A stretch of DNA of 64,000 bases from Isurus oxyrinchus (taxonomy: Eukaryota): assembly GCA_026770705.1 (NCBI GenBank), contig JANJGN010000121.1, positions 1,302,001 through 1,366,000 of the forward strand, in the 5' to 3' direction. Shown piece by piece: positions 19,120-59,188 of this stretch (the stretch's first letter is position 1; the number at the start of each line of letters is the position of its first letter). The notes beneath the pieces were generated by a model, which was not told the origin of the DNA, did not search any database, and saw only the letters and a program-made list of their open reading frames with translations. Both the position numbers and the translations under genes were made by a program.

Positions 19120-21960
19120 AACAAATGAATGAAGTTATAGCACAAATAGAGATTAATGGGTACGATAAGATGGACACTGCAGAGAGTTGGTTGCAAAGTG
19201 ACCAAGGTTGGAAATTGAAAATTGAAGGATATTTGGAATCTTTGAAAGGATAGGAAAAATGAAAAGGAGGTGGGGTAGCTCTCTTAATAAAAGATGAGAC
19301 CTGTAAAGTAGTGAGAAATGATTTTGGCTCAGATGTCAAGATGCACAGTCAGTTTGGGTGAACATAAGGAATTGCAAGGGAAAGAAATCACTGGTGGGTT
19401 GGTTTATACTCCCCCCTGAATGTAGTTACACTGCAGGGGTAGATTATAAATCAATACATGAGGAGGTTTATGAGAAAGGCACCACATTAATCATGGGAGT
19501 TTTCAATCGTCATATGGATTAGCCAAATCAGATTAGCAAATGTAGCTTTCAGCGAGGTTATACAGATTGTATTCAGGACAGTATTTTAGAACAATGCAAC
19601 ATGGAACCAACCAGGGTAGAGGCTGTTTTAGTCCTGGCAATGTTTAATGAGACAAGACTAATTAACATCTCATTGTAAAGGATCCTCAAGGGAAGAGTAA
19701 TCATACGGTGTTGAAATTTAAAATTCAGTTTAGAAACTTGGGTCTGAAACTAGTGTCATAAACTTAACTAAAGGCAAATACAAGGGTTAAAAGCAGAGTC
19801 AGCCCAAGTAGAGTGGGACAGCAGGTTAAAGGGGGCGGGGGGGTGGTAGATGAGGAGTAACAGGCATCTAAAGAAATCTTTCATAAATTCCAATGACAAT
19901 ATTTTCCAGTTAGAAAGAAAGAATCTATAAGAAGGATGGAGCATCGGTGGCTAACTCAGGAAGCTAAGGACGGTATCCAATTGTGAGATAAAGCCGGCAA
20001 TGTTGGGATGTTTAGTGATAGGCTGGAGATTGGGAATATTTGAGAAACCAGAAAAGTGAGGGGAGAAATATAAGGAGGCAGAAATGATGATATGAGAGTA
20101 AACTAGCAAGAACCATAAACAATGACAGTGAGATGTTGTACATTAAAATAAGAGAGAAGCTACAGTAATAATGGGACACATAGAAAATCAGACTGGGGAA
20201 TTAATAATGGGAAACAAGGAAATGACAGAGACTTTCAACAAGAATTTTGGGTCTGTCTTCACAGTAAAAATCTCTAAAACCATCCCAATAGCAGGAGAAA
20301 GTCACGGTGCAACAAGGAGGGAGGAACATAAAACAATCACTATCACCAGAGAAAAAGTATTAAGAAAACTAATGAGACAAATGCTGACAAGTCCCATGGA
20401 GCAGACGGCCTGAATGTGAGGGTCTGAAAGGAAATGGCTGCAGAGACGGTGGATGCATTGGTTGTAATCTTCCAGAATTCCTTAGATTATGGGAAGGTCC
20501 CAGTGGATTGGAAAAACATAAATAAAATATCTCTGTTCAATAAAGGGAGGAGGCAGAAAGCAAGAAACTACAGGTCAGTTAGTCTAATATCTGTCATTGG
20601 GAAAATACCAGAATTCATTATGAAGGAGGGAGCAGCAGGACATTTAGAAATCCATAATTCAATCAGACAGAGTCAACATGGGTTTGTGAAAGGGATATCA
20701 TGTTTGAAAAAATAATTAGATTTCCTCGAGGATGTAACAAGTGGATTGGATAAAGGGGAACCTGTAGATGTGGTGTATTAGGGACTATGACACAGCCAAG
20801 GGTAAAGGCTGAGTTGTTCAAATCCCAGAGGGAAAATTGAAACAACTGTCGTAACCCAATTTTGCAATTTGTAATTTCGAGATGAAGACTCTGAATTCAG
20901 TAGGAATAAGACCACGGAGTCTTGTGGGGGTTTTTCAAAATAAAAAAAAATTATTATTAAAACAAATTTAACACATATGCACAGCTATAAATTATGACTA
21001 CAATAACTTTTTAACAAATCCCCAAATGAAAAACTCTCAGATAAATCTCTACTATGGCAATAGTCACCCATAGGCATTATGGAGACACCAGGCAAAGCAC
21101 ATTTGACATAGGAATTCTGAATGAGGTTCCTTTGCAAGTTGGTTGGAGGCTACAGGCTGGTTCGGTCTGAAATGCTCCTGCCTCACACACACAAACTCCT
21201 TCCTTTATATAGCTAGCTTTCCCTTTGAATGTAAATTTTCCATTGTATCACTCGGTCTTCTGAACTCCACCTCTTCTAACAATAAAACCCCCTTTCATAG
21301 CACCAATTTCATTAATAAGTTCAAGAAAAAACACATCTTTTGGATCCTTCTAACTAGGTGCAAGATTTTACCCCCTGTCTGGAATGGTTTATTCAACAAT
21401 TGCAAATGAACACTTTACTGTTCTCCTCACAATTCACCCAATTAACATCTCAAAACTACTAAACATCAAAGCACACAGACCAGCTGGCTTTAATCCAATT
21501 AAGACACACACAGACACACACCTATACATGGACCACCACTAGAATTCTATTTTAAAATATAATTTCCAAGCACATTTTACACACAAATATCTCTTCATGA
21601 CATTGCATTTCCGAAAGGCATTCGATAAGGTGCCACATCAAAGGATACTGCACAGGGTGAAATTGGATGGTGTTGGGGGTGATATATTAATATGGATAGA
21701 GGACTGGCTAACTGACAGGAAACAGAGAGCCAGGATAAATGGGTGATTTTCAGCTTGGTAAACTGTAACTTGTGGATAGCCACAGGGATCAGTGCTGAGG
21801 CCTCAACTATTCACAATCTACATTAGTGACTTGGATGAAGGGACTGACAGTACTGTAGGAAGATTTTCTGACTGTGTGGTTAAGATAGGTAGGAAATATA
21901 TAAACTGAGCAGGAAAGCAAGTTGTGAGGAGGACACAAAGAGGCTGTAGAGCGAGATAAA
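19120..21960 (+). mobile_element. Degenerate CR1 LINE ORF2 (endonuclease-RT), interrupted by a solo LTR
   Basis: GGGVALLIK, IFQNSLDYGKVPVDWK, NYRSVSLISVIGK, SQHGFVKG, KAFDKVPH, PQGSVL.PQLFTIYI.DLD. Confidence 0.9.
20785..21602. mobile_element. Probable solo LTR nested in the CR1
   Basis: Splits the CR1 VDVVY/DF.KAFDKV motif; ends TCATGACA; homologous to 16407-17164. Confidence 0.65.
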
Positions 21961-22119
21961 TAGTTTCAGTGAGTGGATAAAAAAATGAGTGGATGGAATA
22001 TAAGGAATGAAAATGCCAGGGTGTCCAGCTGATCCTACTTGTTCTGTTCTTATATTCTTATACAGACACAGGGTTTACTGACAGTGCACAGCAAAGTGCT
22101 CTTCTCTCAGTTTGCTCCA

Positions 22120-22253
22120 ACTTCCTCATTTTGACTCACAGTGACACATCAGCTCTTTCTAATTAAATACACAGATAGATCAGCACAGGAAGAGGTCATT
22201 CAGCCCAAACCCAAAGCAGTTCCTCCCCAGGCGAGCAGTCGGACAGGTCCTGG
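22120..22253 (+). promoter_or_regulatory. Unit 1 promoter-like region / non-coding exon (representative of all 20 units)
   Basis: PU.1 box ACTTCCTCATTT (22120-22131), TGACTCA, AT-rich TAATTAAATA, second ETS core CAGGAAG, consensus donor TGG|GTAAGT. Confidence 0.6.
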
Positions 22254-22703
22254 GTAAGTAACGGAACGATTGGAATTCACTTCCACAATCAACACCGTCC
22301 TTTGTTGATGTTGTGACTTTATAAAGACAGATTCCAATGATTGATGCCTTTGAAAGATTTCTACTGATTATTGAGATCTGGGTGTGGGGCTCAAGTCTGT
22401 TGTACAGAACATCTTTCTAGCTCAAGGGATGAGACAAGTGCAGAGACATGAGATTTGGGATGTCCTGAGCAGGTGAAAGGTGCTATAGAAATGCAAGTCC
22501 TTCATTGTTTTTCTTTCTTAAAGCCTAGTAACTCTCTGCAGAGCACCTATCATCCCGCAGAGTATCAAATTAGTCTGTGATGACATTGTCTAAAAGAAGT
22601 TCAGATCTCTCGACAGCTGTCAGACAAGAGGTGAGGTCTTATTAACTCCTTTCTCTTTCACAGCTTGAGAGTGAGAAGCTAATGGAACATCTGCGAGTGG
22701 ACA

Positions 22704-22743
22704 ATGATCGGGAAATCTTACTTTCTCCTGTCATTTCTCCAAG
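22704..22743 (+). CDS. Leader exon, unit 1, MIGKSYFLLSFLQ (intact)
   Basis: ATG..CAAG|GT; acceptor shifted 2 nt (TTCACAG). Confidence 0.7.
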
Positions 22744-24430
22744 GTAATATCATCGTCAGCTCGGACAGATTTATGGTTAATTGTCTTTGTAAAAGATCAT
22801 TTTTATTGCGCTCTGATTGGGCAGTGATTCTGCAGTGAGACAGTGTACAAACTCACACCAAGTCCCATTCACCCATCACCCCTGTGCTCACTGATATACA
22901 CTGACTCCCTGTCTGACAGCAGAATTGGAGGATAGCAGAAGTCCTGGATGGTTGTAGGGGCTGGAGGAGGTTAGAGGGTTAGGCAGGATTGTAGCAGCTA
23001 GATCAGAATCTTAATCTTCAGGTGATGTCGGATGCTGGTCAGTGAGTCATGGGGAGTGATGAGTTGAGCAGTAAATTAGGAATAAACACTGGGAGATGAA
23101 GTCTATCCCGATGCTTGGACTCTGAAAGCAATAACCTGAAATGTGTGCCTTTTGCAGATTTTAGACAGAATTTCCCATGAAGACAACACAGCAGCTCCTA
23201 GAATAGACAGGCTGTTCAGTGTCACACTTCCTGTCCATTCTCACCTTGCTGGAAACTTCAATAAGGGAGCAAGATATCTGAAAGAGAGAAGGAAGGCAAA
23301 GCTGTCTGTGTGTAAAGGTGTCAAGTAGTCTGAGTTAACATCAGTGCCTCTGATCTGCTGCAGAGTTTAAATTTCACAGAATCTGAGCACTTTGCAGCTC
23401 AGAGAGAGACCATTGACTCACTGCCTGAAAGGGCGGTGGAAGCAGATTCAACAGGAACTTTCAGAAGGGGAACTGGATAAATACTTGAAGGGGAAATTTT
23501 GCAGGGCTTTGGAGGAGAGAGCAGAGGAGAGCGTGGGAATAATTAGACAGATATTTCAAAGCTTTCAACAATTCACAATCAATATTGGTGACTTGGATGA
23601 AGGGACTGACTGTACTGTAGGCAGATTTTCTGACTATGTCTGAAAGCAAGTTGTGAGGAGGACACAAAGAGGCTGCAGAGGGAGAATAATAGTTTCAGTG
23701 GGTGGACAAAAAAATGAATGGTTGGCATATAAGGACGGAAAATGTCAGGGTGTCCAGCTGATCCTACTTGTTATGTTCTTATACTCTTATACAGACACAA
23801 GGTTTACTGTCAGTGCACAGCAAAGTGCTGTTCTGTCACTTTGTTCCAACTTCCTCATTTTGTCTCACAGAGATACATCAGCTCTTTCTAATTAAATACA
23901 CAGAGGGAGCAGCACAGGAAGAGGTCATTCAACCCAAGCAGAGCGTGTGGGCAGTTCCTCCCCAGGCGAGCAGTCGGACAGGTCCTGGGTAAGTAACGGA
24001 ACGATTGGAATTCACTTCCACGACCAACACCGTCCTTTGTTGATGTTGTGACTTTATAAAGAGAGATTCCAATGATTGATGCCTTTGAAAGATTTCTACT
24101 GATTATTGAGATCTGTGTGTGAGACTCAAGTCTGTCATACAGAGTATCTTTCTGGCTCAAGAATTGAGGGAAGTGCAGAGACATAAGCTTTGGGATGCCC
24201 TGAGGTGGTGAAAGGCGCTATAGAAATACAAATCCTTCATTTTTTTAAAGCCTTGAAACTCCCTGCATAGCACCTATCATTCCACAGAGAGTCAAATTAG
24301 TCGGTGAAGACATTGTCTAAAAACAGTTCTGATCTCTCGAGAGCTGTCGGACAAGAGGTGAGGTCTCATTAACTCCTTTCTCTTTCAGAGCTTGAGAGTG
24401 AGAAGCTGATGGAATTTCTGGGAGTGGACG

Positions 24431-24470
24431 ATGGTCGGGAAATCGTACTTCCTCCTGTCACTTCTCCAAG
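24431..24470 (+). CDS. Leader exon, unit 2, MVGKSYFLLSLLQ (intact)
   Basis: Acceptor ends 24388; ATG; GT donor. Confidence 0.7.
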
Positions 24471-26171
24471 GTAATATCGTCAGCTCGGACAGGTTTAATG
24501 GTAATAGTCTTTGTAAAAGATCATTCTTATTGAGCTGTGATTGGGAACCGATTCAGGAGTGAGCCAGTGTACAAACTCACACCATGTCCCATTCACCCAC
24601 CATCCCTGTGCTCACTTATATACACTGACTCCCTGTCTCACAGCAGAATTGGAGGGGAGCAGAGATCTCAGAGTGTGGTAGGGGCCGGAGGAGGTTACAG
24701 ATTTGGGCAGGATTGTAGCGGCGAGAGCAGATGTCGGGTGTTGGTCAGTGAGCGAGGGGGATGATGGGTTGAGCAGGAAATCAGGGATGAAAACTGGGGG
24801 ATGAGGTCTATCCCGATGCTAGGACTATGAGAGCTATAACCTGAAATTAGTGTCTTTTGCTTATTTTGGCCAGAATTTCCCATGAAGACAACACAGCAGC
24901 TCCTAGAATAGACAGGATGTTCAGTGTCACACTTCCTGTCCATTCTCACCTTGCTAGAAAATTTAATAAGGGAGCAAGATAACTGAAAGACAGAAAGGAG
25001 GGAAAGCTGTCTATGTGTAAAACTGTCAAATATTCTGAGTTATCATGAGTGTCTCTGATCTGCTGCAGAGTTTAAATTTCAGAGAATCTTAGCATTTTGC
25101 AGCTCAGATAGACACCATTGACTCACTGCCTGAAAGGGCGGTGGAAGCAGAATCAACAGGAACTTTCAGAAGGGGAACTGGATAATTACTTGAAGGGGAC
25201 ATTTTGTAGGGCTGTGGAGGAGAGAGCAGAGGTGAGATGGGAATAAGTGGACAGATATTTCAAAGCCTCAACTATTCACAATCTACATTAGTGACTTGGA
25301 TGAAGAGACTGACTGTACTGTAGGCAGATTTTCTGACTGTATTGTGAAGATAGGTAGGAAATATATAAGCTGGGCAGGAAAGCAAGTTGTGAGGAGGACA
25401 CAAAGAGGCTGCAGAGGCAGATAAATAGTTTCAGTGAGTGGATAAAAAAATGAATGGTTGGCATATAAGGAGGAAAAATGTCAGGGTGTCCAGCTGATCC
25501 TATTTGTTCTGTTCTTTTATTCTTATACAGACACAGGGTTTACTGACAGTGCACAGCAAAGTGCTGTTCTCTCACTTTGTACCAACTTCCTCATTTTGTC
25601 TCACAGTGACACATCAGCTCTTTCTAATTAAATATACAGAGGGAGCAGCACAGGAAGAGGTCATTCAGCCCAAGCAGAGCGTGTGGGCAGTTCCTCCCCA
25701 GGCGAGCAGTCGGACAGGTCCTGAGTAAGTAACAGAACGATTGGAATTCACTTCCACGACCAACACCATCCTTTGTTGATGTTGTGACTTTATAAAGACA
25801 GATTCCAATGATTGATGTCTTTGAAAGATTTCTACTGATTATTGAGATCTGGGTGTGAGGCTCAAGTCTGTTGTACAGAACATCTTTCTAGCTCAAGGGA
25901 TGAGGGAAGTGCAGAGACATGAGCTTTGGGATGCCCTGAGGTGGTGAAAGGTGCTATAGAAATGTAAACCCTTCATTTTTTTTTCTTAAAGCCTTGTAAC
26001 TCCCTGCATAGCACATATCATTCCACAGAGAGTCAAATTAATCTGTCAAGACATTGTCTAAAAGCAGTTCTGATCTCTCGAGAGCTGTCGGACAAGAGGT
26101 GAGGTCTCAGTAACTCCTTTCTCTTTCAGAGCTTGAGAGTCAGAAGCTGATGGAATTTCTGGGAGTGGACA

Positions 26172-26211
26172 ATGATCGGGAAATCTTACTTCGTCCTGTC
26201 ACTTCTCCAAG
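26172..26211 (+). CDS. Leader exon, unit 3, MIGKSYFVLSLLQ (intact, weaker donor GTATT)
   Basis: Read from sequence. Confidence 0.65.
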
Positions 26212-27915
26212 GTATTATCACCGTCAGCTCGGACAATTTATGGTTAATAGTCTTTGTAAAAGATCATTCTTATTGATCTGTGATTGGGAACCGATTCAGG
26301 GGTGAGCCAGTGTACAAATTCACACCAAGTCCCATTCACCCACCATCACTGTGCTCACTTATATACACTGACTCCCTGTCTGTCAGCAGAATTGGAGGAG
26401 AGCAGAGATCTCAGAGTGAGGTAGGGGCTGGAGGAGGTTACAGAGTTGGGCAGGATTGTAGCAGCTAGACCAGATATCCGTCGTTGGTCAGTGAGCGAGG
26501 GCGATGATGGGTTGAGCAGGAAATCAAGGATAAAAACTGGGGTTGAAGTCTATCCTGATGCTAAGACTATGATAGCTATAACCTGAAATTAGTGTCTTTT
26601 GCTGATTTTAGTCAGAATTTCCCATGAAGACAACACAGCAGCTCCTAGAATAGACAGGCTGTTCAAACTGACACTTCCTGTCCATTCTCACCATGCTAGA
26701 AAAATCAATAAGGGCTCAAGATAACTGAAAGAGAGAAGGGAGGCAAAGCTGTCTGTGTGTAAAACAGTCAAATATTCTGAGTTCTCATGAGTGTCTCTGA
26801 TCTGCTGCAGAGTTTAAATTTCACAGAATCTGAGCACTTTGCAGCTCAGAGAGAGACCATTGACTCACTGCCTGAAAGGGCGGTGGAAGCAGATTCAACA
26901 GGAACTTTCAGAAGGGGAACTGGATAAATACTTGAAGGGGACATTTTGTAGGGCTGTGGAGGAGAGAGCAGAAGTGAAAGTGGGACTAATTGGACAGATC
27001 TTTCAAAGCCTCAACTATTCACAATCTATATTAGTAACTTGGATGAAGGGACAGACTGTACTGTAGTCAAATTTTCTGACTGTGTGGTGAAGATAGGTAC
27101 GAAATATTTAAGCTGGGCAGGAAAGTAAGTTGTGAGGAGGACACAAAGAGGCTGCAGAGGGAGATAAATAGTTTCAGTGAGTGGAAAAAAAAATGAGCGG
27201 ATGGAATATAAGGAATGAAAATATCAGGGTGTCCAGCTGATCCTATTTGTTCTGTTCTTATATTCTTATACAGACACAGGGTTTACTGACAGTGCACAGC
27301 AAAGTGCTGTTCTCTCACTTTGTTCCAACTTCCTCATTTTGTCTCACAGTGACACATCAACCCTTTCTAATTAAATACACAAAGGGAGCAGCACAGGAAG
27401 AGGTCATTCAGCTCAAGCAGAGCGTGTGGGCAGTTCCTCCCCAGGCGAGCAGTCGGATAGGTCCTGGGTAAGTAACGGAACGATTGGAATTCACTTCCAC
27501 GACCAACACCGTCCTTTGTTGATGTTGTGACTTTATAAACACAGATTCCAATGATTGATGCCTTTGAAAGATTTCTACTGATTATTGAGATCTGGGTGTG
27601 AGATTCAAGTCTATTGTACAGAACAGTTTTCTAGCTCAATAGATGAGGGAAGTGCAGAGACATGAAATTTGGGATTCCTAGATGGTGAAAGGCGCTATGG
27701 AAATGCAAGTCCTTCCTTGTTTTTCTTTCTTAAAGCCTTGTAACTCTCTGTAGAGCACCTATCATCCCACAGAGAACCAAATTAGTCTGTGAAGACATTG
27801 TCTAAAAGCAGTACTGATCTCTTGAGAGCTGTCGGACAAGAGGTGAGGTCTCATTAAATCCTTTTTCTTTCAGAGCTTGAGAGTGAGAAACTGATGAAAT
27901 ATCTGGGAGTGGACA

Positions 27916-27955
27916 ATAATCGGGAAATCTTACTTCGTCCTGTTGCTTCTCCAAG
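27916..27955 (+). pseudogene. Leader exon, unit 4, start lost (ATA)
   Basis: GGACAATAATC. Confidence 0.7.
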
Positions 27956-29677
27956 GTAATATCGTCAGCTCGAACAGATTTATGGTTAATAGTCTTTGTA
28001 AAAGATCATTCTCATTGAGCTGTGATTGGGAACTGATTCAGCAGTGAGCCAGTGTACAAACTCACACCAAGTCCCATTCACCCATCACCACTGTGCTCAC
28101 TGGTATACACTGACTCCCTGTCTGATAGCAGAATTGGAGGACAGCAGAAGTCTTGGATGCTTGTAGATGCTGGAGGAGGTTACAGAGTTAGGCAGGATTG
28201 TAGCAGCGAGAGCAGAACCTTAAAATTCAGGTGATGTCGGACGTTAGACAGTGACCAATGGGGATTGATGGGATGAGTAGAGAAGCAGGGAGAAATACTG
28301 GGGTATGAAGTCTATCCTGTTGCGAGGTCTCCGATAGCAATGGTCTGAAATTTGTTTCCTTTGCTGCCTTTATTCAAAATTTCCCATGTAGACAACACAG
28401 CAGCTCCTCGAATAGACAGGTTGTTCAGCATTGCACTTCCTGTCCATTCTCACCATGCTAGATACTTCAATAAGGGAGCAAGATAACTGAAAGAGAAAAG
28501 GAAGGCTAAGCTCTCTCTGTGTAAATGTCTCAAATATTCTGAGTTAACCTGAGTGTCTGATCCGCTGCAGAGTATAAATTTCACAGAATCTTAGCACTTT
28601 GCAGCTCAGAGAGAGACCATTGACTCACTGCCTGAAAGGGCGGTGGAAGCTGATTCAGCAAGAACTTTCAGAAGGGGAATTGGGTAAATACTTGAAGGGG
28701 ACATTTTGTAGGGCTGTGGAGAAGAGAGAGCAGAGGTGAGAGTGGGAATAATTGGACAGATCTTTCAAAGCCTCAACTATTCACAATCGACATTAGTGAC
28801 TTGGATGAAGAGACTGACTTCAATGTAGACAGATTTTCTGACTGTATGGTGCAGATAGCTAGGAAATATATAAGCTGAGCAGGAAAGCAAGTTGTGAGGA
28901 GGACACAAAGAGGCTGCAGAGGGAGATAAATAGTTTCAGTGAGTGGATAAAAAAATGAGCGGATGGAATATAAGGAGTGAAAATGTCAGGGTGTCCAGCT
29001 GATCCTACTTGTTCTGTTCTTATTTTCTTATACAGACACAGGGTTTACTGACAGTGCACAGCAAAGTGCTGTTCTCTCACTTTGTTCCAACTTCCTCATT
29101 TTGTCTCACAGAGACACATGAGCTCTTTCTAATTAAATACACAGAGGGAGCAGCACAGGAAGAGGTCATTCAGCCCAAGCAGAGCGTGTGGGCAGTTCCT
29201 CCCCAGGCGAGCAGTCGGACAGGTCCTGGGTAAGTAACAGAACGATTCGAATTCACTTCCACCACCAACACCGTCCTTTGTTGATGTTGTGACTTTATAA
29301 ACACAGATTCCAATGATTGATGCCTTTGAAAGATTTCTACTGATTATTGAGATCTGTGTGTGAGGTTCAGGTCTGTTGTACAGAATATCTTTCTAGCTCA
29401 AGGGATGAGGGAAGTGCAGAGACATGAGATTTGGGATGTCGTAGATGGTGAAAGGCGCTATGGAAATGCATACCTTCCTTGTTTTTCTTTCTTAAAGCCT
29501 TGTAACTCTCTGCAGAGCACCTATCATCCCACAGAGAACCAAATTAGTCTGTGAAGACATTGTCTAAAAGCAGTTCTGATCTCTCGTGAGCTGTCGGACA
29601 AGAGGTGAGGTCTCATTAAATCCTTTTTCTTTCAGAGCTTGAGAGTGAGAAACTGATGAAATATCTGGGAGTGGACA

Positions 29678-47063: not shown

Positions 47064-48782
47064 GTAATATCGTCAGCTCGAACAGATTTATGGTTAATAG
47101 TCTTTGTAAAAGATCATTCTCATTGAGCTGTGATTGGGAACTGATTCAGCAGTGAGCCAGTGTACAAACTCACACCAAGTCCCATTCACCCATCACCACT
47201 GTGCTCACTGGTATACACTGACTCCCTGTCTGATAGCAGAATTGGAGGACAGCAGAAGTCTTGGATGCTTGTAGATGCTGGAGGAGGTTACAGAGTTAGG
47301 CAGGATTGTAGCAGCGAGAGCAGAACCTTAAAATTCAGGTGATGTCGGACGTTAGACAGTGACCAATGGGGATTGATGGGATGAGTAGAGAAGCAGGGAG
47401 AAATACTGGGGTATGAAGTCTATCCTGTTGCGAGGTCTCCGATAGCAATGGTCTGAAATTTGTTTCCTTTGCTGCCTTTATTCAAAATTTCCCATGTAGA
47501 CAACACAGCAGCTCCTCGAATAGACAGGTTGTTCAGCATTGCACTTCCTGTCCATTCTCACCATGCTAGATACTTCAATAAGGGAGCAAGATAACTGAAA
47601 GAGAAAAGGAAGGCTAAGCTCTCTCTGTGTAAATGTCTCAAATATTCTGAGTTAACCTGAGTGTCTGATCCGCTGCAGAGTATAAATTTCACAGAATCTT
47701 AGCACTTTGCAGCTCAGAGAGAGACCATTGACTCACTGCCTGAAAGGGCGGTGGAAGCTGATTCAGCAGGAACTTTCAGAAGGGGAATTGGGTAAATACT
47801 TGAAGGGGACATTTTGTAGGGCTGTGGAGGAGAGAGAAGAGGTGAGATGGGAATAAGTGGACAGATATTTCATAGCCTCAACTATTCACAATCTATATTA
47901 GTAACTTGGATGAAGGGACTGACTGGACTGTAGGCAGATTTTCTGACTGTATGGTGCAGATAGGTACGAAATATATAAGCTGGGCAGGAAAGCAAGTTGT
48001 AAGGAGGACACAAAGAGGCTGCAGAGGGAGATAAATAGTTTCAGTGAGTGAATAAAAAAATGAGTGGATGGAATATATGGAATGCAAATATCAGGGTGTC
48101 CAGCTGATCCTATTTGCTCTGTTCTTATATTCCTATACAGACACAGGGTTTACTGACAGTGCACAGCAAAGTGCTGTTCTCTCACTTTGTTCCAACTTCC
48201 TCATTTTGTCTCACAGTGACACATCAACCCTTTCTAATTAAACACACAGAGGGAGCAGCACAGGAAGAGGTCATTCAGCCCAAGCAGAGCGTGTGGGCAG
48301 TTCCTCCCCAGGCGAGCAGTCGGACAGGTCCTGGGTAAGTAACAGAATGATTCGAATTCACTTCCACGACCAACACCGTCCTTTGTTGATGTTGTGACTT
48401 TATAAAGAGAGATTCCAATGATTGATGCCTTTGAAAGATTTCTACTGATTATTGAGATCTGTGTGTGAGGTTCAGGTCTGTTGTACAGAACATCTTTCTA
48501 GCTCAAGGGATGAGGGAAGTGCAGAGACATGAGATTTGGGATGTCGTAGATGGTGAAAGGCGCTATGGAAATGCATACCTTCCTTGTTTTTCTTTCTTAA
48601 AGCCTTGTAACTCTCTGCAGAGCACCTATCATCCCACAGAGAACCAAATTAGTCTGTGAAGACATTGTCTAAAAGCAGTACTGATCTCTTGAGAGCTGTC
48701 AGACAAGAGGTGAGGTCTCATTAAATCCTTTTTCTTTCAGAGCTTGAGAGTGAGAAACTGATGAAATATCTGGGAGTGGACA

Positions 48783-48822
48783 ATGATCGGGAAATCTTAC
48801 TTCCTCCTGTCACTTCTCCAAG
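48783..48822 (+). CDS. Leader exon, unit 16, MIGKSYFLLSLLQ (intact)
   Basis: Read from sequence. Confidence 0.7.
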
Positions 48823-50545
48823 GTAATATCGTCAGCTCGAACAGATTTATGGTTAATAGTCTTTGTAAAAGATCATTCCCATTGAGCTGTGATTGGGAAC
48901 TGATTCAGCAGTGAGCCAGTGTACAAACTCACACCAAGTCCCATTCACCCATCACAACTGTGCTCACTGGTATACACTGACTCCCTGTCTGATAGCAGAA
49001 TTGGAGGACAGCAGGAGTCTTGGATGCTTGTAGATGCTGGAGGAGGTTACAGAGTTAGGCAGGATTGTAGCAGCGAGAGCAGAACCTTAAAATTCAGGTG
49101 ATGTCGGACGTTAGACAGTGAGCAATGGGGATTGATGGGGTGAGTAGAGAAGCATGGATAAATAGTGGGGGATGAAGTCTATTCTGCTGCAAGGTCTCCG
49201 ATAGCAATGGTCTGAAATTTGTGTCCTTTGCTGCCTTTATTCAAAATTTCCCATGTAGACAACACAGCAGCTCCTCGAATAGACAGGCTGTTCAGTGTCA
49301 CACTTCCTGTCCATTCTCACCTTGCTAGATACTTCAATAAGGGAGCAAGATAACTGAAGAGAGAAGGGAGGCAAAGCTGTCTGTGTGTACAACTGTCAAA
49401 TATTCTGAGTTATCATGAGTGTATCTGATCTGCTGCAGAGTTTAAATTTCACAGAATCTTAGCACTTTGCAGCTCAGAGAGAGACCATTGACTCACTGCC
49501 TGAAAGGGCGGTGGAAGCAGATTCAACAGGAACTTTCAGAAGGGGAACTGGATAAATACGTGAAGGGGACATTTTGTAGGGCTGTGGAGGAGAGAGCAGA
49601 GGTGAGAGTGGGACTAATTAGACAGAAATTTCAAAGACTCAACTATTCACAATCAACATTCGTGACTTGGATGAAGGGACTGACTGTACTGTAGGCAGAT
49701 TTTCTGACTGTATGGTGCAGATAGGTACGAAATATATAAGCTGGGCAGTAAAGTAAATTGTGAGGAGGACACAAAGAGGCTGCAGAGGGAGATAAATAGT
49801 TTCCGTGAGTGGATAAAAAAATGAGTGGATGGAATATAAGGAATGAAAATGTCAGGGTGTCCAGCTGATCCTACTTGTTCTGTTCTTATATTCTTATACA
49901 GACACAGGGTTTACTGACAGTGCACAGCAAAGTGCTGTTCTCCCACTTTGTTCCAACTTCCTCATTTTGACTCAGAGTGGCACATCAGCTCTTTCTAAAT
50001 AAACACACAGAGGGAGCAGCACAGGAAGAGGTCATTCAGCCCAAGCAGAGCGTGTGGGCAGTTCCTCCCCAGGCGAGCAGTCGGACAGGTCCTGGGTAAG
50101 TAACGGAACGATTGGAATTCACTTCCACAACCAATACCGTCCTTTGTTGATGTTGTGACTTTATAAGGACAGATTCCAATGATTGATGCCTTTGAAAGAT
50201 TTCTACTGATTATTGAGATCTGGGTGTGAGGCTCAAGTCTGTTGTACAGAACATCTTTCTAGCTCAATAGATGAGGGAAGTGCAGAGACATGAGATTTGG
50301 GATGTCCTGAGGTGGTGAAAGGTGCTATAGGAATGCAAGTCCTTCCTTGTTTTTCTTTCTTTAAGCCATATAACTCTCTATAGAGCACCTATCATCCCAC
50401 AGAGAATCAAATTAGTCTGTGAAGACATTGTCTAAAAGCAGTTCTGATCTCTCGAGTGCTGTCGGACAAGAGGTGAGGTCTCATTAACTCATTTCTCTTT
50501 CACAGCTTGAGAGTGAAAACCTGATGGAATATCTGGGAGTGGACA

Positions 50546-50585
50546 ATGATTGGGAAATCTTACTTCCTCCTGTCACTTCTCCAAG
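50546..50585 (+). pseudogene. Leader exon, unit 17, donor lost (GT>AT)
   Basis: CCAAG|ATAAT. Confidence 0.7.
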
Positions 50586-52304
50586 ATAATATCTTCAGCT
50601 CTGACAGATTTATGGGTAATAGTCTTTGTAAAAGAGCATTCTTAATGATCTGTGATTGGGAACCGATTCAGCAGTGACACGGTCTACAAACTCACACCAA
50701 GTCCCAATCACCAAACAGCCCTGTGCTCACTTATATACACTGACTTCTTGTACGACAGCAGAATTGGAGGAGAGCAGAGGTCTTGGATGGTTGTAGAGTC
50801 TGGTGGAGGTTACAGAGTTAGACAGGTTTGTAGAAGCTAGAGCAGAATCTTAAAATTCAGTAGCTGTTGGACCTTTGTCAGTGAGCAATGGGGATTGAAG
50901 GGTCGAGTAGAGAAGCAGGGATAAATAATGGGGGATGAAGTCCGTCCTAATGTGAGGTCTCCGATAGCAATGGCCTGTAAAGGTGCCCGTTGCTGCCTTT
51001 ATTCGAAATTGCCCATGAAGACAACACAGTAGCTCCTAGAATAGACAGGCTGTTCAGTGTCACACTTCCTGTCCATTCTCACCATGCTAGATACTTCAAT
51101 AAGGGAGCAAGATAACTGAAAGAGAGAAGGAAGGCAAAGCTGTCTGTGTGTAAAACTGTCAAATATTCTGAGTTCTCATGAGCGTCTCTGATCTGCTGCA
51201 GAGTTTAAATTTCACAGAATCTGAGCACTTTGCAGCTCAGAGAGAGACCATTGACTCACTGCCTGAAAGGGCAGTGGAAGCAGATTCAACAGGAACTTTC
51301 AGAAGGGGAACTGGATAAATACTTGAAGGGGACATTTTGCAGGGCTATGGAGGAGAGAGAAGAGGTGAGAGTGGGAATAATTGGACAGATCTTTCAAAGC
51401 CTCAACTATTCACAATCTACATTAGTGACTTGGATGAAGAGACTGACTGTACTGTAGGCAGATTTTCTGACTGTGTGGTGAAGATAGGTAGGAAATATGT
51501 AAGCTGGGCAGGAAAGCAAGTTGTGAGGAGGGCACAAAGAGGCTGCAGAGGGAGACAAATAGTTTTAGTGGGTGGACAAAAAAATGAATGGTTGGCATAT
51601 AAGGGGGGAAATGTCAGGGTGTCCAGCTGATCCTATTTGTTCTGCTCTTATATTCTTATACAGACACAGGGTTTACTGACAGTGCACAGCAAAGTGCTGT
51701 TCTCTCACTTTGTTCCAACTTCCTCATTTTGTCTCACATTGATACATCAGCTCTTTCTAATTAAATACACAGAGGAGCAGCACAGGAAGAGGTCATTCAG
51801 CCCAAGCAAAGCGTGTGGGCAGTTCCTCCCCAGACGAGCAGTCGGACAGGTCCTGGGTAAGTAACGGAATGATTGGAATTCACTTCCACGACCAACACCG
51901 TCCTTTTTGATGTTGTGACTTTATAAAGACAGATTCCAATGATTGATGCCTTTGAAAGATTTCTACTGATTATTGAGATCTGGGTGTGAGGTTCAAGTCT
52001 GTTGTACAGAACATCTTTCTAGCTCAAGGGATGAGACAAGTGCAGAGACATGAGATTTGGGATGTCCTAGATGGTGAAAAGCACTATTGAAATGCAAGTC
52101 CTTCCTTGCTTTTCTTTCTTAAAGCCTTGTAGCTCACTGCAGAGCACCTATCATCCCGCAGAGAACCAAATTAGTCTATGAAGACATTGTCTAAAAGCAG
52201 TTCTGATCTCTCGAGAGCTGTCGGACAAGAGGTGAGGTCTCATTAAATCCATTTTCTTTCAGAGCTTGAGAGTGAGAAACTGATGAAATATCTGGGAGTG
52301 GACA

Positions 52305-52344
52305 ATGATCGGGAAATCTTACTTCGTCCTGTCGCTTCTCCAAG
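52305..52344 (+). CDS. Leader exon, unit 18, MIGKSYFVLSLLQ (intact)
   Basis: Read from sequence. Confidence 0.7.
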
Positions 52345-54066
52345 GTAATATCATCAGCTTGAACAGATTTATGGTTAATAGTCTTTGTAAAAGATCATTC
52401 TCATTGAGCTGTGATTGGGAACTGATTCAGCAGTGAGCCAATGTACAAACTCAAACCAAGTCTCATTCACCCATCACAACTGTGCTCACTGGTATACACT
52501 GACTCCCTGTCTGACTGCAGAATTGGAGGAGAGCAGAGATCCTGGATGGTTGTAGAGGCTGGAGGAGGTTACATACTTAGGCAGGATAGTAGCAGCGAGA
52601 GCAGAATCTTAAAATTCAGGTGATGTCGGACATTGGACATTGAGCAATGGGGATTGATGGGTTGAGTAGAGAAGCAGGGATAAATACTGGGGAATGTAGT
52701 CTATTCTGCTGCAAGGTCTCCGATAGCAATGGTCTGAAATTTGTGTCCTTTGCTGCCTTTATTCAAAATATCCCATGAAGACAACACAGCAGCTCCTAGA
52801 ATAGACAGGCTGTTCAGTATCACGCTTCCTGTCCAGTATCACCATGCTAGATACTTCAATAAGGGAGCAAGATAACTGAAAGAGAAAAGGAAGGCTAAGC
52901 TCTCTCTGTGTAAATGTCTCAAATATTCTGAGTTCTCATGATTGTCTCTGATCTGCTACAGAGTTTAAATTTCACAGAATCTGAGCACTTTGCAGCTCAG
53001 AGAGAGACCATTGACTCACTGCCTGAAAGGGCGGTGGAAACAGATTCAACAGGAACTTTCAGAAGGGGAACTGGGTAAATAGTTGAAGGGGACATTTTGT
53101 TGGGCTGTGGTGGAGAGAGCAGATCTGAGAGTGGGAATAATTGGACAGATCTTTCAAAGCCTCAACTATTCACAATCTACAGTGGCGACTTGGATGAAGA
53201 GACTGACTGTACTGTAGACAGATTTTCTGTCTGGTGCAGATAGGTACGAAATATATAAGCTGTGCAGGAAAGCAAGTTGTGAGGAGGGCACAAAGAAGCT
53301 GGAGAGGCAGATAAATAGTTTCAGTGAGTGGATAAAAAAATGAGTGGTTGGCATATAAGGAGGGAAAATGTCAAGGTGTCCAGCTGATCCTACTTGTTCT
53401 GCTCTTATATTCTTATACAGACACAGGGTTTGCTGACAGTGCACAGCAAAGTGCTGTTCTCTCACTTTGTTCCAACTTCCTCATTTTGACTCACAGTGAA
53501 ATATCAGCTCTTTCTAATTAAATACACAGATGGATCAGCACAGGAAGAGGTCATTCAGCCTTAGCAGAGCGTGTGGGCATGTTCCTCCCCAGGCGAGCAG
53601 TCGGACAGGTCCTGGGTAAGTAACGGAACAATTGGAATTCACTTCAATGACCAGCACCGGGCTTTAGTTGATGTTGTGACTTTATAAAGACAGATTCCAA
53701 TGATTGATGCCTTTGAAAGATTTCTACTGATTATTGAGATCTGGGTGTGAGGCTCAAGTCTGTTGTACAGAACATCTTTCTAGCTCAAGGGATGAGGGAC
53801 GTGCACAGACATGAGCTTTGGGATGTCCTGAGGTGGTGAAAGGTGCTATAGAAATGCAAGTCCTTCCTTGTTTTGTTTTCTTAAAGCCTTGTAACTCTAT
53901 GTAGAGCACCTATCATCGCACAGAGAATCAAATTAGTCAGTGAAGACATTGTTTAAAAGCAGTTCTGATCTCTCGACCGCTGTCGGACAAGACGTGAGGT
54001 CTCATTAAGACCTTTCCCTTTCAGACCTTGAGAGTAAGAAGCTGATGGAATATCTGGGAGTGGACA

Positions 54067-54106
54067 ATGATCGGGAAATCTTACATCTTGCTGTCACTTC
54101 TCCAAG
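54067..54106 (+). CDS. Leader exon, unit 19, MIGKSYILLSLLQ (intact)
   Basis: Read from sequence. Confidence 0.7.
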
Positions 54107-55814
54107 GTAATATCATCGTCAGCTCAGACAGTTTTATGGTTAATAGTCTTTGTAAAAGATCATTCTTATTGATCTGTGATTGGGAACTGATTCAGCAGTG
54201 AGCCAGTGTACAAACTCATACCAAGTCCCATTCACCCATCACCCCTTTGCTCACTGATGTACACTGACTCCCTGTCTGACAGCAGAATTGGAGGAGAGCA
54301 GAGGTCTTGGAGGGTTGTAGGGGCTGGAGGAGGTTACAGAGTTGGGCAGGATTGTAGTGGCGAGATCAGATGTCGGGCGTTGGCCAGTGAGCGAGAGGGA
54401 TGATGGGTTGGGCAGGAAATCAGGGATGTAAACTAGGGGATGAAGTCTATCCCGATGCTAGGACTATGACAGCTATAAGCTGAAATTAGTGTCTGTTGCT
54501 GATTTTAGTCAGAATTTCCCATGAAGGCAACACAGCAGCTCCTAGAATAGACAGGCTGTTCAGCATAACACTTCCTGTCCATTCTCACCATGCTAGAAAC
54601 TTTGATAAGGGCGCAAGATAACTGAAAGAGAGAAGGGAGGCAAAGCTGTCTGTGTGTACAACTGTCAAATATTCTGAGTTCTCATGAGTGTCTCTGATCT
54701 GCTGCAGAGTTTAAATTTCACAGAATCTGAGCACTTTGCAGCTCAGAGAGAGACCATTGACTCACTGCCTGAAAGGGCGGTGGAAGCAGATTCAATAGGA
54801 ACTTTCAGAAGGGGAACTGGATAACTACTTGAATGGGACATTTTGTAGGGCTGTGGAGAAGAGAGCAGAGGTGAGTGTGGGAATAATTGGACAGATATTT
54901 CAAAGCCTCAACTATTCACAATCCACATTAGTAACTTGGATGAAGGGACTGACTGTACTGTAGACAGATTTTCTGACTGTATGGTGCAGATAGGTACTAA
55001 ATATTTAAGCTGGGCAGTAAAGCAAGTTGTGAGGAGGACACAAAGAGGCTGCAGAGGGAGATAAATAGTTTCAGTGAGTGGATAAAAAAATGAGTGGATG
55101 GAATATAAGGAATGAAAATGTCAGGGTGTCCAGCTGATCCTATTTGTTCTGTTCTTATATTCTTATACATACACAGGGTTTACTGACAGTGCACAGCTAA
55201 GTGCTGTTCTCTCACTTTGTTCCAGCTTCCTCATTTTGACTCACAGTGACACATCAACCCTTTCTAATTAAATACACAGAGGGAGCAGCACAGGATGAGG
55301 TCATTCAGCCCAAGCAGAGCGTGTGGGCAGTTCCTCCCCAGACGAGCAGTCGGACAGGTCCTGGGTAAGTAACGGAACGATTGGAATTCACTTCCACGAC
55401 CAACACTGTCCTTTGTTGATGTTGTGACTTTCTAAAGACAGATTCCAATGATTGATGCCTTTGAAAGATTTCTACTGATTATTGAGATCTGGGTGTGAGG
55501 TTCAAGTCTGTTGTACAGAACATCTTTCTAGCTCAAGGGATGAGGGAAGTGGAGTGACATGAGCTTTGGGATGTCCTGAGGTGGTGAAAGGTGCTATAGG
55601 AATGCAAGTCCTTCCTTGTTTTTCTTTCTTTAAGCCATGTAACTCTCTGTAGAGAACCTATCATCCCACAGAGAATCAAATTAGTCTGTGAAGACATTTT
55701 CTACGAGCAGTTCTGATCTCTTGAGAGCTGTCGGACAAGAGGTGAGGTCTCATTAACTCCTTTCTCTTTCAGAGCTTGAAAGTGAGAAACTGATGAAATA
55801 TCTGGGAGTGGACA

Positions 55815-55854
55815 ATGATCGGGAAATCTTACTTCGTCTTGTCGCTTCTCCAAG
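55815..55854 (+). CDS. Leader exon, unit 20 (V-proximal), MIGKSYFVLSLLQ; whole exon 55773-55854
   Basis: Phase-1 donor joins V exon 58820 to give MIGKSYFVLSLLQ-VGLSQ-EWK; no other leader seen between 55854 and 58820. Confidence 0.85.
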
Positions 55855-57032
55855 GTAATATCGTCAGCTTGGACATATTTATGGTTAATAGTCTTTGTAA
55901 AAGAGCATTATTATTGATCTGTGATTGGGAACCGATTCAGCAGTGACTCAGTGTACAAATTCACACCAAGTCCCAATCACCGAACAGCCCTGTGCTCACT
56001 TATATACACTGACTCCTTGTAAGACAGCAGAATTGGAGGAGAGCAGAGGTCTTGGATGGTTGTAGAGTCTGGAGGTGGTTACAGAGTTAGACAGCTTTGT
56101 AGCAGCTGGAGCAGAATCCAGGTGCTGTCGGACTTCGGTCAGTGAGCGATGGGGATTGACGGGTTGAGTAGAGAGGCAGGGATAAAAACTGGGGTATGAA
56201 GCCTATCCTAATCTGAGGTCTCCGATATCAATGGCCTGAAATTTGTGTCCTTTGCAGCCTTTATTCAAAATTGTCCATGAAGACAACACAGCAGCTCCTA
56301 GAATAGACAGGCTGTTCAGTGTCACACTTCCTGTCCATTCTCACCATGCTAGATACTTCAATAAGGGAGCAAGATAACTGAAAGAGAGAAGGAAGGCAAA
56401 GCTGTCCGTGTGTAAAACTGTCAAATATTCTGAGTTATCATGATTGTCTCTGACCTGCTGCAGAGTTTAAATTTCACAGAATCTGAGCACTTTGCAGCTC
56501 AGAGAGAGACCATTGACTCACTGACTGAAAGGCCGGTGGAAGCAGATTCAACAGGAACTTTCAGAAGGGGAACTGGATAAATACTTGAAGGGAAATTTGC
56601 AGGGCTGTGTGAAAGTTGCTGGTGAGGAATTGGGAAAGAGTCAGCACAAGCACGATGAGTCAAATGAGCTCCTCCTGTGTTGTATCATTCAACAATCAGA
56701 CAATTTAAGACCCTTATCAGCAAATCTTCAGAATCCTGCTGAATCATAGATGTTTCAGAAGGACAGGGAACAAGAGGTTTCTGGTATCAGCGTTTCATGT
56801 GGGGCCCAGTTCAGTTTGAACAAATAAACAACACCATCTTTGAAAGTCATGAGCCCACCACAGCGGCACCTCCGACACATGCAGAGCTCAGGCTAGAGGC
56901 ACTTTGTTAGTGTGTTTCACAGTCTCTGCTGGAGTAGGGTCAGTGCTGAGCTTGGGGACAAGTCAGTCTACAATGCTGCATCGGAATCAACAATACAACA
57001 ATATGGGGTTTGGATCAGAAATAATCCCTTAG

Positions 57033-57140
57033 ACAATGAGGATCCAAAGAGATTCCTTTGGCAGTGAGGATCCAAAGAGATTCCTCAGACAATGAGGATC
57101 TAAAGAGATTCCTTTGGCAGTGAGAATCCAAAGAGATTTC
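57033..57140. repeat. ~27-29 bp tandem repeat (CAATGAGGATCCAAAGAGATTCC...), 4 copies
   Basis: Visible. Confidence 0.8.
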
Positions 57141-57299
57141 TTATTCCATTGGTTGTCTAACTGGGGTCCATGATTTTCCAAGGGGTCCTTGGCAGAATGA
57201 AATTATCGAGCAATAGTGTGTAAAATACCGGAGAGAACGGGAAAGGTGGGATAAATGGAAAACTGTTCACTCTGTTTACACTAATGGGAGTCAGTCTCA

Positions 57300-57550
57300 G
57301 TAATGGAGACCATGAAACTATCATTGATTGTCATACACACCCATCTGGTTCACTAATGGCCTTTAGGGAAAGAAATCTGCCGTCTATATCTGGTCTGGCC
57401 TACATGTGACTCCAGACTGATGGGAACTTGTCTGACTCTTCAACAGTCCTCTGAAATGTCCGAGCAATCCCCTCCATTCGAGGGACATTAGGGATGAGCA
57501 GCAAATGCTGGCCTTGGCAGCGACGCCCACATCCCATGAATGAATACATT
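57300..57550 (+). mobile_element. SINE 3' portion
   Basis: Homologous to 8355-8710. Confidence 0.7.
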
Positions 57551-58319
57551 TACAAAATCTTATTACTTGGAAGGTGCAAGTGCAGGTTGTTATGATCCTT
57601 GAGCAGACCCTCTCAGCACTGACCCTACTCCAGCAGACCCTGCGAAACACACTAACAAAGCGCCTCTCGCCTGAGCTCTGCATGTGTCGGAGGTGCCGCT
57701 GCGGTGGGTTCATGACTTTCAAAGATGGTGTTGTTTATTTGTTCAAACTGAACTGGGCCCCACACAAAACGCTGATACCAGAAACCTCTTGTTCCCTGTC
57801 CTTCTGAAATATCCGTGACTTCAGCAGGATTCTGAAGAGTTGCTGATGGAGGAACAGGCACCCAATTTTTTGGGATAATTTACAGTTAGGAACCAATAAT
57901 ATTTTGTTTCAAGTAGATGAGGTTTGAGATTTAAGATGCTTGCGAAGAGAATAAAGCTACAAGATTCCATGGCTTTTAAACAAACAAAAATAAACTTTAC
58001 TGCACCAGTTCAGAAAGATAAAATAATTCACAATATCCACCTTATAGCCTAATATTCTGTGAAGAGAATAACTAGAGGCCGAGTGATTGGTGATTCCTTA
58101 AACATTGAAGAGGGAATGAACACCAATCAGATTGAATCAGATTAGCCAATCAGCTGTATTGAAGAGCAGACAGGAATGTTAGGCTAATTAGTGATTCATG
58201 ACGGTGATAATGGGGGGAGTTCTGAGGGCTCCTAATCCATTGTCCTGTCTTGTAAATCAGCACTGAATGGATCTCAATGGTGCGTCTTGTGTTGGGTGGA
58301 AGACTGGCTTCACTAAGGG

Positions 58320-58580
58320 GAAGCGGTAGCAGAGAGGTATTGTCACTGGGCTAGTATTCCAGAGGCCCAGGGTGATGCTCTGGGGCCCTGGGTGTGAATC
58401 CCATCACGGCAGATGAATGAAATTAAAAAGCCTGGTTCACTGATCACCTATAGGGAAGGAAATCTGCCACCCTTACCCAGTCTGGCCTACATGTCACTCC
58501 AAACCCACAGCAATGTGGTTGACTCTTAAATGCCTCTGATGGGTATGGGATGGGTAATAAATGCTGGGCACATGCCATTA
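58320..58580 (+). mobile_element. tRNA-derived SINE
   Basis: Homologous to 8355-8710. Confidence 0.7.
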
Positions 58581-58819
58581 ACGAATAATTTGAAAAAAGC
58601 TAAACAGGGTCCTGAGGACCATGAGCCAATGTAGAATGAACTTGTCCACTCCTGTGTCCAGGATTCTCTTCCATCCAATGTGAAACCTTGGGGAGATCCC
58701 TGTGTGTCCTGTAGATGGTCCACACTGCAGCAGTGTGCCCCAGTGATGGAGGGAGTGGATATCGAATCCAGTGGATCTACAAACCATCCAGAGTTAAATA
58801 TTGATATTTCTCTCCCCAG

Positions 58820-59188
58820 TTGGACTGTCACAAGAGTGGAAAGGTGACACTCCACGAGAGGTGACAGCGCAGGAAGGTTCGTGTGTACAGATTCCATGTC
58901 ATTACAGTTATCCATCACATTTGGAAAACCAGCCACGAGTCGGAGTCTGGTTTAATAACGAGAATCAGATTCCTGGATCTCCCATAGCCTTTCACTCCAA
59001 GGATCACAGTCACGAGTTACCACGGTTCCGCCAACGGACCCGGCTGTCTGGAGACCTGAAAGATGGCGACTGTTCCCTGATTATAAACAACATCAGACGG
59101 GAAGATGCAGGACCTTATTTTTTCAGAATAGAATTTGACCGAAGTAATAGATACAACTACTATCCTGTAACCCGGCTTCACATTTCTG
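58820..59188 (+). CDS. Siglec V-set exon, locus B (intact, essential Arg present)
   Basis: AG/GT, phase 1/1, 369 nt; GSCVQIPC, GVW, RTRLSGD..GDCSLIINNIRREDAGPYFFRIE; B-E strand Cys pair characteristic of Siglecs. Confidence 0.92.

Follow-up and report, generated by a model that had tools for sequence, protein, structure and literature searches.

Does a gene that is preceded by some twenty copies of its own beginning use many of these copies, or are most of them passive products of tandem duplication? This question is raised by a locus of the shark Isurus oxyrinchus (GenBank assembly GCA_026770705.1, contig JANJGN010000121.1, positions 1,302,001 to 1,366,000, forward strand), a stretch of 64,000 nucleotides (nt) that is referred to here as the window. 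An earlier examination of the letters alone (the sequence-only reading) had proposed that twenty tandem cassettes, each with a promoter and a signal-peptide (leader) exon, feed one V exon of a Siglec gene. The structure is real and unusual. In our favoured reading, to which we assign a probability of about 50%, it is a macrosatellite of the 5' module that evolves largely neutrally and has one productive unit, probably the one closest to the V exon. All coordinates below are window positions.

A tandem array of 1.76-kb units

A blastn search of the window with the unit at 50001-51760 as query resolves 21803-56606 into tandem units arranged head to tail, 19 of them full and 2 partial (~19.7 units, period ~1.74-1.76 kb); TRF, with a longest period of 500, is blind to it. 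The units are 88-98% identical to the reference unit in blastn and 89-99% identical to one another in a pairwise matrix. The array starts with a 363-bp partial copy at the left, and its last copy, U20, is cut at unit position ~1346. The proposed array of twenty ~1.76-kb units is thus borne out by blastn, the identity matrix and a tree, whereas its limits have to be redrawn: homology begins at ~21803 within a LINE (long interspersed nuclear element) fragment, the array ends at 56606, and 2.2 kb of unique intron follow before the V exon. The units are listed below with their exon-1 block and leader exon, the state at the end of each line being that of the leader.

21803 to 56606, + strand: tandem array of the Siglec 5' module; partial unit 21803-22164, U1-U19 complete, U20 truncated (blastn, boundary alignments, tree)
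21543 to 21905, + strand: decayed LINE reverse-transcriptase fragment across the left edge of the array, of which the units hold the 3' part only (translation, weak RVT_1 match)
22165 to 23893, + strand: U1; exon-1 block 22170-22253 (6-nt deletion); leader 22662-22743, acceptor AG shifted 2 nt, MIGKSYFLLSFLQ, intact
23894 to 25629, + strand: U2; exon-1 block 23905-23988; leader 24389-24470, MVGKSYFLLSLLQ, intact
25630 to 27372, + strand: U3; exon-1 block 25641-25724 (last exon base G>A); leader 26130-26211, MIGKSYFVLSLLQ, donor GTATTA, intact
27373 to 29134, + strand: U4; exon-1 block 27384-27467; leader 27874-27955, start codon ATA, broken
29135 to 30896, + strand: U5; exon-1 block 29146-29229; leader 29636-29717, MIGKSYFVLLLLQ, intact
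30897 to 32653, + strand: U6; exon-1 block 30908-30991; leader 31398-31479, start codon ATA, broken
32654 to 34403, + strand: U7; exon-1 block 32666-32749 (+1 nt); leader 33158-33239, MIGKSYFFLSLLQ, intact
34404 to 36165, + strand: U8; exon-1 block 34415-34498; leader 34907-34988, MIGKSFFLLSLLQ, intact
36166 to 37923, + strand: U9; exon-1 block 36177-36260; leader 36667-36748, MIGKSYFVLSLLQ, intact
37924 to 39465, + strand: U10; exon-1 block 37936-38019; leader deleted (~240 bp, unit positions ~455-691)
39466 to 41213, + strand: U11; exon-1 block 39478-39561; leader 39969-40050, MIGKSYFFLSLLQ, intact
41214 to 42975, + strand: U12; exon-1 block 41225-41308; leader 41717-41798, MIGKSYFLLSLLQ (the family consensus), intact
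42976 to 44732, + strand: U13; exon-1 block 42987-43070; leader 43477-43558, MIGKSYFVLSLLQ, intact
44733 to 46480, + strand: U14; exon-1 block 44745-44828; leader 45238-45319, TGA at codon 10, broken
46481 to 48239, + strand: U15; exon-1 block 46492-46575; leader 46982-47063, MIGKSYFLLSLLQ, intact
48240 to 50000, + strand: U16; exon-1 block 48251-48334; leader 48741-48822, MIGKSYFLLSLLQ, intact
50001 to 51762, + strand: U17; exon-1 block 50012-50095; leader 50504-50585, open reading frame (ORF) intact, acceptor shifted 2 nt, donor GT to AT, broken
51763 to 53519, + strand: U18; exon-1 block 51773-51856; leader 52263-52344, MIGKSYFVLSLLQ, intact
53520 to 55269, + strand: U19; exon-1 block 53532-53615; leader 54025-54106, MIGKSYILLSLLQ, intact; the spliced contig of set X9 aligned here
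55270 to 56606, + strand: U20, V-proximal and truncated; exon-1 block 55281-55364 (AGGAAG to AGGATG); leader 55773-55854, ATG at 55815, MIGKSYFVLSLLQ, intact

The array is ~35 kb long and has the properties of a macrosatellite, namely many copies of units of at least 1 kb and a higher-order structure. In a maximum-likelihood tree the units fall into four subfamilies (U7/U11/U14/U19 with U2, U3 and U1; U8/U12/U17 with U20; U9/U13/U18; U4/U5/U15/U16/U6), and subfamily blocks recur along the array, as A-B-C at U7-9 and U11-13 and as B-C-A at U17-19. Terminal branches are long for the edge units U1-3, U19 and U20 (0.033-0.068) and short for the interior units U4, U5, U7-9, U11-13, U15, U17 and U18 (0.005-0.018); U10, which carries the 240-bp deletion, is the interior exception with a branch of 0.042. 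Repeated subfamily blocks and long edge branches together are a signature of unequal exchange. The array is a genuine macrosatellite that, judged by its unit genealogy, appears to have been shaped and partly homogenised by unequal crossing-over.

The same genealogy bears on whether the assembly has over-expanded or mis-joined a repeat, which we consider very improbable. Runs of N do occur at 18168-18347 and 60830-60970, though both are outside the array. The units differ by 1-11%, which makes a collapsed or inflated assembly of identical copies unlikely, and their structured genealogy and unit-specific lesions also speak against an artefact. Moreover, two DNA-like contig sets of a related organism show up to 5-7 distinct contigs over single unit sites, so that more than one copy is present in that organism as well, although paralogues may contribute.

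Both edges of the array are informative on its origin. The left edge (~21803) lies inside a decayed LINE reverse transcriptase, the reading frame of which (AFDKVPH...LFTIYISDLDEG) continues from unique DNA into the first partial unit; against RVT_1 this fragment aligns weakly and in the same order at profile positions 65-107 and again at 120-154, and neither match reaches the Pfam cut-off. The right edge (56606) falls within the leader-V intron according to the boundary alignment. Breakpoints in LINE debris and in intron 2 point to segmental tandem duplication of a stretch that contained the gene start, rather than to a dedicated element or a purpose-built cassette. A transposon was considered as the identity of the unit and ruled out, as the unit is devoid of an intact ORF and its edges are ordinary breakpoints in older transposable-element debris. 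An Rfam scan of 19000-60000 returned no RNA family, and hence no small nuclear RNA or spliced-leader-RNA-type gene in the unit.

One receptor body downstream of the array

The exons that follow the array belong to a single receptor gene, the 3' end of which is beyond the window.

56607 to 58819, + strand: unique 3' part of the leader-V intron, with an inverted repeat and repeats resembling short interspersed nuclear elements (SINE-like); very high contig depth at 57263-57656 and 58248-58641
58820 to 59188, + strand: sole V-set exon of the Siglec gene (369 nt; starts and ends in phase 1; Pfam, structure relatives)
59589 to 59887, + strand: C2-set exon (DFTDKPTIF...LTVQ), 3' end approximate (tblastn, 94% identity to the white-shark relative; Pfam C2-set_2)
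60523 to 60801, + strand: first repeated stalk Ig exon of the same gene (second copy at 62645-62920)

The V exon matches Pfam V-set (4.1e-14) and Ig_CD22 (4.4e-10), and its best solved relatives are Siglec-5, Siglec-10, CD33, MAG, sialoadhesin, Siglec-8 and Siglec-7 (5e-17 to 6e-14). In a phmmer alignment YFFRIEF aligns with YFFRVE of Siglec-5 (2zg2), so that the sialic-acid arginine is found in the motif FFR(I/V)E. The layout is that of a Siglec, with V-set and then C2-set domains and the signal peptide on a separate phase-1 exon. The prediction of one V exon at 58820 behind the array is therefore correct, as is the predicted junction ...SLLQ-VGLSQ-EWK. Read by eye and compared with RefSeq N-termini, the leader ends in ...CAA G and the V exon starts with TT GGA, which gives the codon GTT (Val) in agreement with the RefSeq proteins (MIGKSYFLLSLLQVGLSQEWKGDTPRE).

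Two side observations concern this part of the locus. The stalk Ig exons at 60523-60801 and 62645-62920 are near-identical and 83-95% identical to the five repeated domains of Carcharodon XP_041037188.1. In the array-V intron there is an inverted repeat with arms of 207 nt (56744-56950 and 57612-57818) that are 94% complementary and separated by 661 nt. Between its arms lie a 56-bp tandem repeat (57027-57138) and a very highly represented SINE-like stretch; the whole (56744-57818) may be a foldback or terminal-inverted-repeat element.

Contents of one unit

The duplicated segment comprises the LINE-fragment tail, ~110 bp of ETS-rich upstream DNA, a non-coding exon 1, a 412-nt intron, an 82-nt signal-peptide exon and ~750 nt of the next intron. 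The exon-1 donor, CCTG(G/A) followed by GTAAGT, is present in 20/20 units, so the donor that the sequence-only reading had described per unit (TGG, then GTAAGT) was found throughout, with G>A at the last exon base of U3. All three ETS-like motifs are retained in 19 units, and U20 is without one of them.

The leader exon is exactly 82 nt long in 19 units and missing from U10 (the ~240-bp deletion). It starts with AGCTTGAG, ends with CTCCAAG and is flanked by a 14-pyrimidine tract with a CAG acceptor and by an AAG-GTAATA donor. It is thus an internal exon, which reads CTCCTTTCTCTTTCAG|AG...CAAG|GTAATA in 18/19 copies, the exception being U17, in which the donor is lost. An ATG 40 nt before the exon end opens a frame with a phase-1 end that encodes MIGKSYF(L/V/F)LSLLQ, and the coding share of the leader is hence 13 residues of a predicted cleaved signal peptide. 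Four leaders are broken (U4 and U6, ATG to ATA; U14, TGA at codon 10; U17, donor GT to AT) and 15 are intact; the earlier count of 19 phase-1 AG..GT exons of 82 nt, 15 of them intact, held unit by unit. Codon 8 is CTC in U2, U6, U12, U15-17 and also U1 (TTT at codon 7); with flanks, the site also reads GTC...TCG (U9, U13, U18), GTC TTG (U20), TTC (U7, U11, U14) and ACATCTTG (U19).

Each leader also has a second, upstream ATG in another frame (MKYLGVDNDREILL...), for example at 55793-55795 (the ATG of CTGATGAAATATC). Some white-shark RefSeq models, among them XP_041037179.1, start at this ATG and splice to a cryptic acceptor within the V exon; in catsharks and the whale shark it is in frame (MKYLEGTMIGKSYF, MKYLGATMIGKSYF).

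A 5' module typical of elasmobranch Siglecs

With the V exon and the V region of a white-shark relative as queries, protein searches found ~90 Siglec models in RefSeq, which belong to sharks, skates and rays. More than 60 of these start with MIGKSYFLLSLLQ or close variants, followed by VGLSQEWK or AGLAQ.W., and white, basking and whale sharks are among the species. The closest model, Carcharodon XP_041037188.1, is 94% identical in V and 94% in C2 and has the same repeated stalk domains.

Two lines of evidence connect the parts of the module by splicing. First, Carcharodon XP_041037216.1 starts with MGNSSPGEHSDRSW, SLRVRSEWHIWEWTMIRKSYFLLSLLQ and VGLS in turn (...SPGEHSDRSW, then SLRVRSEW..TMIRKSYFLLSLLQ, then VGLS), which corresponds to the exon 1 of the unit joined at the GTAAGT donor to the leader, and then to V. 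Second, among the joints listed, an RNA-like contig (set X9, depth 178) carries 53615>54028 and, after a 2-nt ambiguity, 54106>58820. A three-exon start (exon 1, leader, V) is therefore real in the family. The contigs of sets X1 and X9 are RNA-like, and those of X19 and X22 are DNA-like, with even low depth over introns. Almost the whole depth of the V-exon contigs of X1 and X9 has A at 59030 and T at 59034, where the window has G and A, and the X9 organism shows indels at 58962-58978 as well, so that these contigs stem from other species or paralogues and no contig is assignable to a unit. As the consensus leader resembles U19 and U20 to about the same degree, the X9 contig documents splicing in the family and not the use of a given unit.

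On this comparative evidence, the repeated unit is the ordinary 5' module of elasmobranch Siglec genes, with the receptor body encoded once downstream. The RefSeq Siglecs (XP_041037188.1, XP_041037216.1 and Cetorhinus XP_078390089.1) share with the locus the leader peptide, the V, C2 and repeated Ig exons and the exon 1-leader splice; in a comparison of protein models only, they imply one leader per transcript, whereas the locus here has ~20 copies. The proposal that only the 5' part of the gene is amplified, with the same mature receptor from every productive transcript, agrees with a module made of upstream region, exon 1 and signal-peptide exon in front of one V exon.

Exon 1 as a relative of a cytoplasmic-tail exon

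The 84-nt stretch that leads up to the exon-1 donor has the translation GSSTGRGHSAQAERVGSSSPGEQSDRSW, with the frame intact and identical in 11/20 units (e.g. 55281-55364 and 46492-46575). This peptide matches basking-shark XP_078390089.1 immediately behind its transmembrane region (24/27 identical, 89%, E 5e-14) and is also similar to Heptranchias XP_067831312.1. The match implies that the non-coding first exon and the cytoplasmic-tail exon of the family are copies of one another. Whether the non-coding exon was copied from the tail coding exon or the reverse, it is a small case of exon re-use.

This relationship changes the meaning of the PU.1 box that the sequence-only reading had placed in each unit. 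The AGGAAG is present as described, yet it forms the T-G-R-G codons of the tail-homologous block and is mutated in the V-proximal U20, and its regulatory identity is not supported: a motif that is inherited within a coding-derived block can be accounted for without any role in regulation. The Heptranchias model XP_067831312.1 reads ~57 nt further upstream of the block, and the transcription start is therefore likely upstream of it, near the CTTCCTCATTTTGACTCA motif.

Splicing and frame of transcripts from the array

On the favoured reading, the array arose by tandem duplication of a 1.76-kb segment that held the whole 5' module of the gene; unequal crossing-over would then have expanded it and evened out part of the differences between its copies. 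The firing of individual units and the splicing of their transcripts are inferred from the structure: the likeliest source of productive mRNA is the unit with a leader that splices directly to V, by default the proximal U20, and the upstream copies would drift nearly neutrally.

The properties of the leader speak for this reading. As an internal exon with a strong acceptor and donor, it should be chained in transcripts that start upstream: a transcript from unit k would include the leaders of k+1 to 20, unless some rule skips downstream leaders. Chaining disrupts the frame, for 82 mod 3 = 1. A leader entered in phase 1 stays open and exits in phase 2, and one entered in phase 2 stops at its second codon. 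The last ATG is consequently the only one from which V is read in frame, and ORFs that open farther upstream terminate at codon 2 of the third leader or shortly after they enter V. Such chained 5' regions would be full of out-of-frame AUGs and would be poorly translated.

Decay and constraint among the copies

Rates were expressed as Fitch parsimony steps per site on the unit tree. The whole unit scores 0.58, intron 1 0.54, the leader exon 0.51 and the 40 coding nt of the leader 0.60, so that the coding part of the leader evolves at the pace of the introns. Steps per site, indels and a rough ratio of nonsynonymous to synonymous changes across units gave nothing significant for purifying selection on the leader; the leaders are free of indels, which is not significant either (2.1 unique events expected). 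Five of the 20 units (U4, U6, U10, U14 and U17) are disabled and incapable of productive mRNA, which by a rough estimate is about what neutral decay would produce at this divergence. As a separate observation, each unit contains a piece of a 37-bp satellite family (unit positions ~841-1000), which is its fastest-changing segment (0.97 steps per site).

Several observations weigh against a largely neutral array. Exon 1 is the slowest segment (0.29 steps per site, 9th percentile of same-size windows), and its three CpGs are kept in 58/59 copies versus 64% at 16 other CpG sites; the intronic CpGs that lie 9 and 14 nt past the exon have disappeared from 25-45% of the units. All 20 exon-1 donors and, in 19 units, the three ETS-like motifs are kept, and 15/19 leaders are still intact. 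Finally, the sole spliced contig among those listed, which is of ambiguous origin, joins the leader directly to V and is placed on U19 and not on U20. These patterns hint, without proving it, that the core promoter and exon 1 may be under constraint in many units.

Several of these observations also speak for a functional multi-promoter array, in which many units initiate, each leader is spliced directly to V, and copy number sets dosage or one unit is used per cell. Here the conservation of exon-1 donors, ETS-like motifs and exon-1 CpGs in nearly all units, together with the intact leaders, would reflect use, and the contig that spans leader to V over 4.7 kb would have skipped the leader of U20. 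Duplicated alternative first exons on a common exon also have a precedent: mouse Snrpn has nine alternative upstream non-coding U exons (U1-U9) that are mostly spliced to a common exon, with the protein unchanged (PMC3248558). These exons, however, extend over ~580 kb instead of forming a compact head-to-tail array of 1.76-kb units; their role, transcription through an imprinting centre, is established, and they are without a start codon or signal peptide. In the shark locus, the leader coding sequence is unconstrained and five units are dead, no mechanism is evident by which up to 19 strong internal exons would be skipped, and the X9 contig, with its V-exon indels (58962-58978), comes from another species or a paralogue and says little by its placement on U19. 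We treat the multi-promoter array as a tentative possibility.

In a wider form, most of the twenty units would be live promoters in either of two ways, which we jointly consider doubtful. Either the same receptor would be made from ~15 interchangeable modules, with an output that scales with a fast-evolving copy number or with one unit picked per cell, or the mRNAs would carry a variable number of leaders, the out-of-frame AUGs of which act as a graded translational brake.

A role at the level of DNA or chromatin would account for a different combination of the data, namely motifs and exon-1 CpGs that are conserved while leader ORFs decay. The ~60 ETS-type sites could serve the proximal promoter as enhancer or as factor sink, or the array length could set a repeat-induced chromatin state. 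Ribosomal DNA spacer promoters are the model for the former version. The latter has its model in D4Z4/DUX4, in which kb-scale tandem units each carry a promoter and part of the gene, and only the terminal unit, the distal one followed by a polyadenylation site, yields stable productive mRNA (PMC5368697). D4Z4 units hold a whole retrogene ORF, whereas the shark array repeats the 5' module only and the gene body is single-copy downstream. As ETS cores are short and common, and one of the three motifs lies in the block inherited from a coding exon, such a role is unlikely. A largely neutral macrosatellite with one productive unit remains our favoured reading.

Comparison with known variable-exon systems

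The literature on shark Siglec gene structure and on tandem promoter or first-exon arrays yielded no description of such a layout, only analogues. The nearest ones in outline are the clustered protocadherins and UGT1A, which have in common with the array tandem homologous 5' exons with their own upstream regions and shared downstream exons. In those systems the exons that vary are genuine first exons, lack an acceptor and code for the diversified ectodomain or substrate domain. The array unit, in contrast, has two exons; the coding one is internal, has a strong acceptor and contributes nothing but a signal peptide that is cleaved off. The unit's copies are 88-99% identical, several are dead, and their promoter use is a candidate property. 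The repeated coding exon thus differs from a variable first exon in having an acceptor, and the repeated exons encode no diversified functional domain. Of the analogy that had been drawn to these clusters, the tandem 5' exons in front of shared exons hold up, and the splicing mechanism does not, given a leader that is internal, acceptor-bearing and 82 nt long.

Neighbouring features

Upstream of the array, exons at 14762-15019, 16125-16295 and 17699-17959 (+) match the cytoplasmic tail, bearing an immunoreceptor tyrosine-based inhibitory motif (ITIM), of the white-shark MAG-like Siglec XP_041037066.1 with 62-77% identity. Another Siglec gene therefore ends just before the array, and its tail exons (14.7-18 kb) appear duplicated. 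A distant V-like exon is found at 4783-5028 (+; 32% identity). Satellite families of 33 bp and 37 bp occur on both strands across the window (2124-2843, 11744-12082, 14090-14528, 17290-17574 and 59996-60386; also 7922-8171 and 10861-11681). On the minus strand, 61418-62314 holds an open frame of 298 amino acids that by eye resembles the C-terminal part of a LINE reverse transcriptase and is without a Pfam match; it lies in the intron between the two repeated Ig exons and so is apparently a young insertion.

Implications

What the locus means for elasmobranch immune receptors depends on the use of the upstream units. If they are used, the expression of an immune receptor would be determined by how many copies there are of a repeat that consists of its own promoter and signal-peptide exon. 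Such a copy-number layout, if true, would differ from the logic of the protocadherins and UGT1A, and it could evolve quickly by unequal crossing-over. If most units are live, this would be a vertebrate immune receptor regulated via a macrosatellite of its own 5' end, of which no description was found in the literature searched. If the upstream units are unused, the locus would be a natural example of a gene that tolerates twenty decoy starts and splice sites, and as such it bears on splice-site choice and promoter interference.

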